Assembly (NCBI GenBank): GCA_002269645.1
Contig: NIVC01000595.1
Coordinates: 1 to 36,020, forward strand
Source of the DNA: Macrostomum lignano
Taxonomy: Eukaryota
Reading direction: 5' to 3'
Length of the DNA: 36,020 bases
The notes beneath the pieces are model-generated. The model searched no databases. It was given only the letters and a program-made list of their open reading frames with translations, and was not told where the DNA came from. Shown piece by piece: positions 28,581 to 29,632 of the stretch (positions are counted from its first letter, which is position 1; every line of letters starts with the position of its first letter). Both the position numbers and the translations under genes were made by a program.

Positions 28581-29632
28581 TCAGAACGCAGTGCAAGCGG
28601 CAGAGAAGGCTGCAGCCGACGCCAGCAGCAGTCCGGCACTAATGAGGCCTACGGCAGATTTGGTCACCTTCTTCTTATAATCCGGCGTTGCAGTCGGTGG
28701 ATCCCGCTTCAGCTGGTCGACGCCGTCACCGATGACGGCGTTGCAGTTGTCGGTGGCGCACACCTTGCAGTCCACGTAGTTGGGCAGCGCGGTCAGCCCG
28801 GCGCAGCCGTCTTGGTTGTAGCAGCCCTTGTAGTACTGCGCAATGGGAGTCATTAGATAGGCATTTGGTGGAGCTGAATCTCGCACATTGCACTGTCTAT
28901 GCTTTGTATATCTGTACTCCCATGCACCTCATCAAGTGTTCCAGGCATGCCTCCAGACGCCAAGACACACCTCTAGACGGCACTCTACAGATCTTGAAAC
29001 CTTCTGGATTCTCCTGCACCCACATCTAGGGAACTCACTGTCTTCCCTCTGGAGTTCTGATAGGCATAGCTGATGCAAACCCGAAGCCCGTCTGTGCATT
29101 CGCGACTGACACCAGATTCTGGCGATGGCGCGCTAGAAGCCATGATACACTTGAGACCCTGCGCCATGCCTGCGGGGGAAGAAAAGTTAGTTGCTTAGTT
29201 ACTTAGTTAGTTAGTTAGTTAGTTAGTCAGTCAGTTAGTTAGTTAGTTAGTTAGTTAGTTAGTTAGTTAGTTAGTTAGTTAGTTAGTTAGTTAGTTAGTT
29301 AGTTAGTTAGTTAGTTAGTTAGTTAGTTAGTTAGTTAGTTAGTTAGTTAGTTAGTTAGTTAGTTAGTTAGTTAGTTAGTTAGTTAGTTAGTTAGTTAGTT
29401 AGTTAGTTAGTTAGTTAGTTAGTTAGTTAGTTAGTTAGTGAGTTAGTTAGTTAGTTAGTTAGTTAGTTAGTTAGTTAGTTAGTTGGGTAGTTTGTTAGGT
29501 AGTTAGTTCGCTAGTAAGGTAGTTCGCTAGTTAGTTAGGTAGTTAGTTGGCTAGTTAGAGGACCCTGACTGCGGACTTACCGATTGCATTGGCGGCCAGA
29601 AAGCCGATAAGGATCAATGTGATGTTTTGCAT
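28581..29632 (-). CDS. Three-finger (Ly6/uPAR, Quiver/Sleepless-like) protein with hydrophobic GPI-type tail, 145 aa; exons 29632-29581, 29169-29039, 28835-28581
   Basis: Splices in frame (52+131+255 nt) to MQNITLILIGFLAANAIGMAQGLKCIMASSAPSPESGVSRECTDGLRVCISYAYQNSRGKTYYKGCYNQDGCAGLTALPNYVDCKVCATDNCNAVIGDGVDQLKRDPPTATPDYKKKVTKSAVGLISAGLLLASAAAFSAACTAF*. Signal peptide, 8-Cys domain ending CxxCxxDNCN, hydrophobic C-terminus. Confidence 0.88.
29186..29558. repeat. (TTAG)n tetranucleotide microsatellite filling intron 1 of the GPI-type three-finger gene
   Basis: Near-perfect run of about 370 bp. Confidence 0.97.

Follow-up and report, generated by a model that had tools for sequence, protein, structure and literature searches.

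Contig NIVC01000595.1 of the free-living flatworm Macrostomum lignano (assembly GCA_002269645.1) was analysed over its entire length of 36,020 bp, which is referred to here as the window. Three related genes were identified on its minus strand, arranged head to tail. The gene at positions 28581 to 29632, which is unannotated in the M. lignano genome, encodes a predicted protein of 145 amino acids (aa) in which a single LU (Ly6/uPAR-type, three-finger) domain is followed by a polar stalk and a hydrophobic C terminus resembling a glycosylphosphatidylinositol (GPI) attachment signal. For brevity, we call it the anchored gene. The other two, solA and solB, encode shorter proteins that stop at the end of the domain and are called the soluble genes. 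The anchored gene comprises three exons and two GT-AG introns in phases 1 and 0. Its parts and the two soluble genes are as follows.

29581..29632, minus strand: exon 1, 52 nt, with the ATG and the signal peptide MQNITLILIGFLAANAI-G; donor G/GTAAGT, intron phase 1
29170..29580, minus strand: intron 1, 411 nt, most of which is an (AACT)n microsatellite at 29185-29558
29039..29169, minus strand: exon 2, 131 nt, encoding the N-terminal half of the LU domain with Cys25, Cys42 and Cys49 and without the loop-1 cysteine pair
28836..29038, minus strand: intron 2, 203 nt, phase 0, within loop 2 of the LU domain
28740..28835, minus strand: LU part of exon 3, encoding YYKGCYNQDGCAGLTALPNYVDCKVCATDNCN with Cys66, 72, 84, 87 and 92 and Asn93
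28584..28739, minus strand: 52-codon extension of exon 3, encoding the stalk AVIGDGVDQLKRDPPTATPDYKKKVTK, S121/A122 and 23 hydrophobic residues; putative GPI-attachment signal
4342..5136, minus strand: solA, exons 5136-5079, 4693-4569 (or 4702-4569) and 4443-4342; 94 aa, TAG after CN
25608..26380, minus strand: solB, exons 26380-26323, 25959-25835 and 25709-25608; 94 aa, TAA after CN

The N terminus of the anchored protein is signal-peptide-like (MQNITLILIGFLAANAIG), and its domain spans about 70 residues, contains eight cysteines and ends in DNCN. A stalk of 29 polar, Pro/Lys-rich residues (AVIGDGVDQLKRDPPTATPDYKKKVTK) leads to 23 uncharged, moderately hydrophobic residues (VGLISAGLLLASAAAFSAACTAF) that run up to the stop codon at 28581-28583. 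Both segments are encoded by exon 3 (28835-28581, 255 nt including the stop), and the gene model reproduced the continuation of 52 aa past CN to a hydrophobic tail that had been proposed in the initial annotation.

LU domains are defined as 60 to 90 residues with a stereotyped set of 8 to 10 disulfide cysteines. In the archetypal gene, a signal-peptide exon with a phase-1 boundary precedes two domain exons that are split in loop 2, and the anchor signal is located in exon 3 (PMC6600238). The anchored gene follows this plan: its eight cysteines lie within about 70 residues, intron 1 is in phase 1 just past the signal peptide, intron 2 separates Cys49 from Cys66 and coincides with the turn of the long hairpin of the structural model, and the tail is encoded by exon 3. 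The Asn that directly follows the last cysteine in LU domains is present in all three genes, as DNCN, and forms the C terminus of both soluble proteins. The cysteine pattern is C-16-C-6-C-16-C-5-C-11-C-2-C-4-CN. Aligned with a 10-cysteine beetle member of PF00087, the flatworm proteins retain C1, C4 to C10 and the final Asn; the loop-1 pair C2-C3 is all that is missing. Since the 8-cysteine pattern is common to both types, the loop-1 disulfide would have been lost before they split. The C8-C9 spacing is 2 (C-K-V-C), compared with a quoted Ly6 range of 0 to 1, and the same C-x-x-C spacing occurs in the beetle protein; the C9-C10 spacing is 4 (range, 3 to 5).

The best Pfam match of all three proteins was QVR (PF17064). 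It was weak (soluble proteins, E = 6e-4; anchored protein, E = 0.05) but full length, ending at CN. Toxin_cobra-type models scored 13 to 15 bits against a threshold of 25.3, and the beetle relative passes PF00087 with 22.4 bits against 21.2. The three-finger fold was seen in the predicted structure only. A full-length AlphaFold model was poor (predicted local distance difference test score [pLDDT], 49) and was replaced by a model of the trimmed domain (pLDDT, 77). The best 50 Foldseek matches of the trimmed model in the PDB were all three-finger or LU folds, among them Lynx2, Prod1, SLURP-2, Lypd6b, snake three-finger proteins and BMP/activin receptor ectodomains; template modeling scores ranged from 0.5 to 0.73 and probabilities reached 1.0, but E values were only 0.01 to 0.6. 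We place the genes in the LU superfamily. They are not strict Ly6 genes, because the C1-X-X-C2 motif that serves as the criterion for Drosophila and Schistosoma Ly6 proteins (PMC4492491) is missing.

When the anchored protein was compared with the window by tblastn, exactly two other loci were found, solA and solB (exon 3 part, E = 1e-10; exon 2 part, E = 0.004), and the search detected no further LU-like exon in the window. Judged by these alignments, the similarity between the two types is far beyond chance. The initial annotation had described a common three-exon layout with common phases, a shared exon 1 end and the motif LT(A/S)LPNY.DC.VC..DNCN, and these observations held throughout: intron positions are identical, all introns are GT-AG and all frames are intact, the last 11 nt of exon 1, CAATGCAATCG (..NAI), are identical in both types, and the motif occurs in all three genes. 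The soluble genes were likewise found to stop directly after CN, as described, with unrelated sequence downstream; the DNA similarity of exon 3 ends exactly at that codon.

The exons of solA and solB measure 58, 125 and 102 nt, with introns in phases 1 and 0. Their coding sequences differ at 6 of 285 nt (three nonsynonymous differences, two synonymous differences and the stop codon), and their flanks are 96 to 99% identical. Each soluble gene offers two in-frame intron 1 AG acceptors 9 nt apart (gcccAG/ACCCCGCAG/CTGG; window positions 4694-4702 and 25960-25968). The sole annotated model, PAA80125.1, a partial hypothetical protein of M. lignano, is located on another contig (locus L001) that matches the solA region at 836 of 837 nt. 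It uses the upstream AG, which lengthens exon 2 to 134 nt and the solA product to 97 aa, and its reading frame extends 42 nt upstream of the ATG. With the upstream AG, the region of predicted signal-peptide cleavage gains the three residues DPA, and the alignment gap relative to the anchored protein closes (GMAQGLKC versus DPAAGLRC). A total of 183 nt for exons 1 and 2 in both types, to which the initial annotation had drawn attention, is obtained with the downstream AG; with the upstream AG of the GenBank model, the total for the soluble genes becomes 192 nt. Because the equality depends on which of the two in-frame acceptors is chosen, it is incidental, but the common intron positions and phases are not.

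Over their common part, the anchored and soluble proteins are 48% identical. The number of synonymous substitutions per site (dS) is about 1.3, which is saturated, the nonsynonymous value (dN) is 0.41 and omega is about 0.3. The exon 3 half (dN = 0.17) is much more constrained than the exon 2 half (dN = 0.69), and the introns and flanks of the two types do not align. These values point to old paralogs. The idea that the loss or gain of an anchor has been captured at one locus was therefore not borne out, as a dS of about 1.3 implies an old split in which nothing is caught in the act. DNA behind the soluble genes that had once encoded a tail would no longer be recognisable at this divergence, so the unrelated downstream sequence says nothing about mechanism or direction. 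For the same reason, the failure to find a tail relic or orphan exon 3 behind the soluble genes (tblastn in the window, E <= 10) is uninformative. In-frame read-through of both soluble 3' untranslated regions met many stops and showed no similarity. The dS of exon 3 taken separately is still 1.13, which led us to reject recent gene conversion between the two types in this exon.

Searches for relatives that could indicate the direction of change were largely negative. The anchored protein alone had no match at E <= 1 in the protein collection search. A profile of the three sequences was then used in word-indexed searches and in a full HMMER scan of 1.84 billion representative proteins. The full scan gave only one strong match, PAA80125.1, which is the soluble gene itself. 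The next acceptable match was a borderline one (E = 7e-4) to a tail-less ladybird beetle protein of 96 aa. Two further matches to repeat proteins, one of them bacterial and one an ENA entry, were judged to be due to chance. Including the beetle protein in the profile yielded no new matches, and HMMER detected no similarity to trematode Ly6 proteins. As no outgroup was found, no phylogeny was possible and polarity rests on the family-wide prior. The locus itself cannot show whether the anchor was lost or gained.

By that prior alone, loss is the more likely direction. Most single-domain LU proteins across animals are GPI-anchored, all 11 Ly6 proteins of Schistosoma mansoni and all 20 of Fasciola gigantica are predicted to be anchored, and loss of the anchoring region is described as relatively common and recurrent in the family (PMC10421932). 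Anchor gain would instead start from a secreted LU ancestor in which loss of the stop codon allowed read-through into the 3' untranslated region, with the stalk and hydrophobic signal evolving later. The sole acceptable match outside Macrostomum, the beetle protein, lacks a tail, as this scenario would have it. The tail of the anchored protein is also compositionally simple (Ala/Ser/Leu/Gly), and about 20% of random sequences with the tail base composition stay open for 52 codons by chance. However, the beetle protein is too distant to serve as an outgroup, and the prevalence of anchored LU proteins together with the frequency of anchor loss runs counter to a gain, which we regard as unlikely.

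The nature of the tail was judged by rule inspection, using hydropathy and candidate omega sites. After the polar linker, small residues precede 23 uncharged residues (mean Kyte-Doolittle value, 1.85) that reach the stop codon, leaving no cytosolic residues. Small residues occupy positions 121 to 124, and the candidate omega sites by rule are S121-A-V and A122-V-G. The tail is most likely a GPI-attachment-type signal, albeit a putative one. A C-terminal transmembrane helix of type I without a cytoplasmic domain, or a retention signal, would account for the same residues, as 23 uncharged residues are long enough to cross a bilayer and the spacer from the small-residue site to the hydrophobic run is atypically short for a GPI signal. 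Against such a helix, the hydrophobic run ends the protein and the only charges (KKKVTK) are on the lumenal side, and basic residues in that position argue against a conventional type I membrane anchor. Moreover, GPI signals are typically of moderate hydrophobicity and contain much Ala, Ser and Gly, as this tail does, and an LU domain with such a tail in exon 3 is the standard layout of GPI-anchored members. A transmembrane or retention tail is thus quite unlikely.

The same region was found on two further contigs, here L002 (NIVC01003882.1) and L003, by look-up of a neighbouring single-exon open reading frame (ORF). Both keep the order anchored gene, tRNAs, soluble gene. L002 is 99.8% identical to the window across the anchored gene and its flanks, and L003 is collinear at about 94% identity, with an intron 1 of 615 nt. 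The reading frame and splice sites of the anchored gene are intact in all three genomic copies. As a separate observation, the soluble copy on L002 (about 4824-4880) carries a 1-nt deletion in exon 1, which measures 57 instead of 58 nt, so that its frame is shifted; this reflects either an error of the long-read assembly or pseudogenisation of this allele.

Between the window and L003, the coding sequence of the anchored gene differs at five positions, all in the tail, of which four are synonymous and one is conservative (Ala140Val). Given 43 synonymous and 113 nonsynonymous sites in the tail, this corresponds to a dN/dS of about 0.1 (Fisher's exact test, P = 0.02) with the frame kept. The 3' flank of the gene shows 22 substitutions in 745 nt as well as indels. 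In exon 3, the LU part (0.63) and the tail (0.61) have a similar GC content, which falls to 0.38 immediately past the stop; the corresponding fall in the soluble genes, from 0.57 to 0.28, comes immediately past CN. The GC content at third codon positions (GC3) is 0.70, and each of the two alternative frames of the tail is interrupted by several stops. These observations support a tail that is coding and constrained. Exon 2, intron 2 and the LU part of exon 3 (28740-29169, 430 nt) show no differences at all between the window and L003, compared with at least 3% in the tail and flanks. This stretch may represent a local conversion tract or an unusually conserved intron.

We consider it probable that the locus holds a small head-to-tail LU family, in which a gene of the anchored type, with a putative GPI signal, and two copies of the secreted type go back to an old split that was followed by a recent duplication of the soluble form. 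Several points weigh against this reading. The spacer that should separate the candidate omega site from the hydrophobic run is short, hydrophobic or absent; the test for selection on the tail comprises five substitutions only; and the 430-nt stretch, having no differences, is uninformative on constraint of the domain. All three proteins score below the Pfam gathering thresholds (15.1 to 21.2 bits against 27.3 for QVR). They also depart from the strict Ly6 definition of a C1-X-X-C2 motif and ten cysteines, as they contain LKC-IMA (anchored) or LRC-HSA (soluble) and eight cysteines. None of the three contigs with the anchored gene has a gene call for it, and its product was found in neither of the protein collections searched and thus lacks transcript support. 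The possibility that the anchored gene is an untranscribed or decaying copy and that only the soluble genes are functional would fit the missing gene calls, the lack of a matching protein in 5.8 billion clusters and the annotated model of a soluble gene with its frame open 42 nt upstream of the ATG, but is very unlikely in view of the frame and splice sites kept in three genomic copies, the ratio of 4 synonymous changes to 1 conservative change in the tail, the GC3 and the drop in GC at the stop that are typical of coding sequence, and the fact that solB and the soluble copies on L002 and L003 are unannotated too. Annotation of the region is sparse, the soluble gene adjacent to the anchored gene being without a gene call on the window, L002 and L003 alike. 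A literature search returned nothing relevant on Macrostomum Ly6 genes, the locus tag Mlig009825 or the tRNA and satellite features of this genome.

The soluble genes are embedded in a duplicated unit of about 2.8 kb, each copy of which contains three tRNA-Arg genes and two minisatellites. The two copies of this unit and the tRNA gene closest to the anchored gene are located as follows.

3524..6352, minus strand: duplicated unit copy 1, with tRNA-Arg (GCG variant), 25-mer array (258 bp), solA, tRNA-Arg, 23-mer array and tRNA-Arg
18298..27729, minus strand: duplicated unit copy 2, with tRNA-Arg, 25-mer array (expanded, 6.75 kb), solB, tRNA-Arg, 23-mer array and tRNA-Arg
27763..27835, minus strand: tRNA-Arg(ACG), the tRNA nearest the anchored gene, 746 bp beyond its stop codon

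Outside the arrays, the unit copies are 91 to 93% identical. The soluble genes had been described as amplified inside tRNA cassettes. They do sit in a tRNA-bearing unit, but the two copies seen here reflect one recent segmental duplication. The anchored gene is outside the cassettes, as stated, but it ends just 746 bp from the first tRNA of the second one.

Seven tRNA-Arg genes were located in the window, all on the minus strand (3526-3599, 5378-5451, 6040-6113, 18300-18373, 26622-26695, 27423-27496 and 27763-27835). Six of these share one sequence with the anticodon ACG (Rfam, 58.8 bits). Two substitutions distinguish the seventh, and one of them turns its anticodon to GCG; the equivalent copy on NIVC01000596.1 reads ACG. 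A tRNA-Arg(ACG) with its own T-run terminator ends 241 bp upstream of each soluble ATG on the same strand (5378-5451 and 26622-26695 in the window; 4888-4961 in L003), and a TATTTAAG box is found about 150 bp beyond the 3' end of this tRNA. Owing to this spacing, the RNA polymerase II promoter of the soluble genes is squeezed behind an RNA polymerase III gene, and both were duplicated together. Large minisatellite arrays occupy 8535-14976 (39-mer, 162 copies) and 18599-25353 (25-mer, 271 copies). Array length is highly unstable between copies, as the 25-mer array spans 258 bp in cassette 1 (3838-4095), 6.75 kb in cassette 2 and less than 0.9 kb in L003.

In the mechanism that we propose, the product of the anchored gene would enter the secretory pathway as a protein with a single 8-cysteine LU domain, a polar stalk of about 29 residues and a hydrophobic peptide. 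Most likely, this peptide would be exchanged for a GPI anchor at an omega site near S121/A122, so that the LU domain would be displayed on the outside of the cell. The soluble paralogs have no residues beyond the last Cys-Asn and should be secreted. If LYNX1/SLURP and insect Quiver-type proteins are a guide, the target of the anchored form, acting in cis, may be a receptor or channel in the membrane, and the soluble forms may reach the same or related targets at a distance. Only the soluble copy was duplicated recently, as a passenger of the 2.8-kb unit with its three tRNA-Arg genes and unstable minisatellites.

Mixed clusters of anchored and secreted LU genes are well documented and the arrangement is already familiar. 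The human genome has 48 LU genes, 11 of them for secreted proteins, and the 8q24 cluster holds SLURP1 and SLURP2 beside LYNX1 and LYPD2 (PMC6600238, PMC10421932). The flatworm locus resembles this LY6 cluster in its three-exon genes for single LU domains, in tandem duplication, in the position of anchored beside secreted genes and in the location of the anchor signal in exon 3; SLURP-2, together with Lynx2, is also among the structural matches of the flatworm domain. It differs in that there is no orthology at the sequence level, that the flatworm proteins have 8 instead of 10 cysteines with C-x-x-C spacing before the last loop, and that the secreted copies lie within a unit of tRNA genes and minisatellites.

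The initial annotation had correctly quoted that snake three-finger toxins derive from a membrane-anchored Ly6 gene by anchor loss; according to Koludarov et al. (2023, PMC10421932), they arose from an anchored LY6E-like gene that lost its membrane-anchoring region. The flatworm genes share with them the fold, the contrast between anchored and secreted forms ending at CN, duplication of the secreted type and the 8-cysteine pattern without the loop-1 disulfide that is seen in derived toxins. On the other hand, the flatworm locus shows no sign of toxicity, a venom apparatus, large expansion or diversifying selection, and tblastn found no relic of a duplicated exon 3 in the window. The likeness is at the fold level only, and sequence matches had E values of 0.69 or worse. 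Coming from a flatworm and scoring below the thresholds of the Pfam toxin models, the genes lie outside the snake three-finger toxin group. The suggested invertebrate parallel to toxin evolution stands only as a generic likeness of secreted genes beside anchored ones; nothing points to a toxin function, and such pairs are common (PMC6600238, PMC10421932). A bolder proposal is that Macrostomum independently converted an anchored 8-cysteine protein into a secreted one and now copies the secreted lineage through tRNA-Arg/minisatellite recombination, as an early invertebrate replay of the route to snake toxin arrays with an outward role in seminal fluid, adhesion or defence. We find this scenario distinctly doubtful.

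Trematodes have the Ly6/CD59-like families SmLy6A-K and FgLy6. These are from the same phylum, are small, combine a signal peptide with an LU domain and show lineage-specific duplication and rapid divergence, and their GPI-type C terminus resembles that of the anchored Macrostomum gene. The trematode proteins contain C1-X-X-C2 and a full set of 10 cysteines, whereas C2 and C3 are missing from the Macrostomum proteins. An anchor is predicted for every trematode member, and the predicted attachment site is often the Asn of CN itself. The anchored Macrostomum protein instead bears a 29-residue stalk, and two copies have no anchor signal. Insect Quiver/Sleepless proteins (QVR) correspond to the best Pfam match, and the C-x-x-C....CN ending also occurs in the beetle homolog. 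However, the Quiver family is GPI-anchored with 10 cysteines, and the flatworm scores are 15 to 21 bits against 27.3. Specific to this locus are its occurrence in a free-living flatworm, the 8-cysteine pattern in both types, the long stalk of the anchored form and the placement of the soluble genes in a tRNA/minisatellite unit.

Several other features were recorded along the contig. A single-exon ORF of 94 aa at 31498-31782 on the plus strand has a signal-peptide-like start and several cysteines. It has no Pfam match and is an annotated gene on four contigs of the assembly. An exon of an ML (MD-2-related lipid-recognition) domain protein lies at 32823-33074 on the minus strand (window ORF, PF02221, E = 1.8e-4), and annotated neighbouring genes in L002 to L004 also bear PF02221. 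The 3' part of a PP2C phosphatase gene occupies 1-1727 on the plus strand, with PF00481 matched on L001 and on a window ORF; a 42-mer minisatellite (725-1336) separates the PP2C-like ORF at 569-740 from the ORF at 1452-1727. Repeats of 15/30 nt (GTCCCTGGTGCTAAA and variants) at 2933-3191 and 35597-36020 would read as VPGAK-type or Gly/Pro/Ala-rich peptides, and the latter array runs off the contig end.

These results add an unannotated gene to a model flatworm genome. The contrast in anchoring opens no new question by itself, and the pairing of a tRNA gene with the soluble promoter, along with minisatellite instability, may be of more interest to genome biologists. For the LU family, the locus indicates that free-living flatworms have both anchored-type and secreted-type proteins, whereas the described families of parasitic flatworms were reported to be all anchored. 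If orthologs from other Macrostomum species were to polarise the change, the locus would provide one more dated case of anchor loss in a family in which such loss is recurrent.

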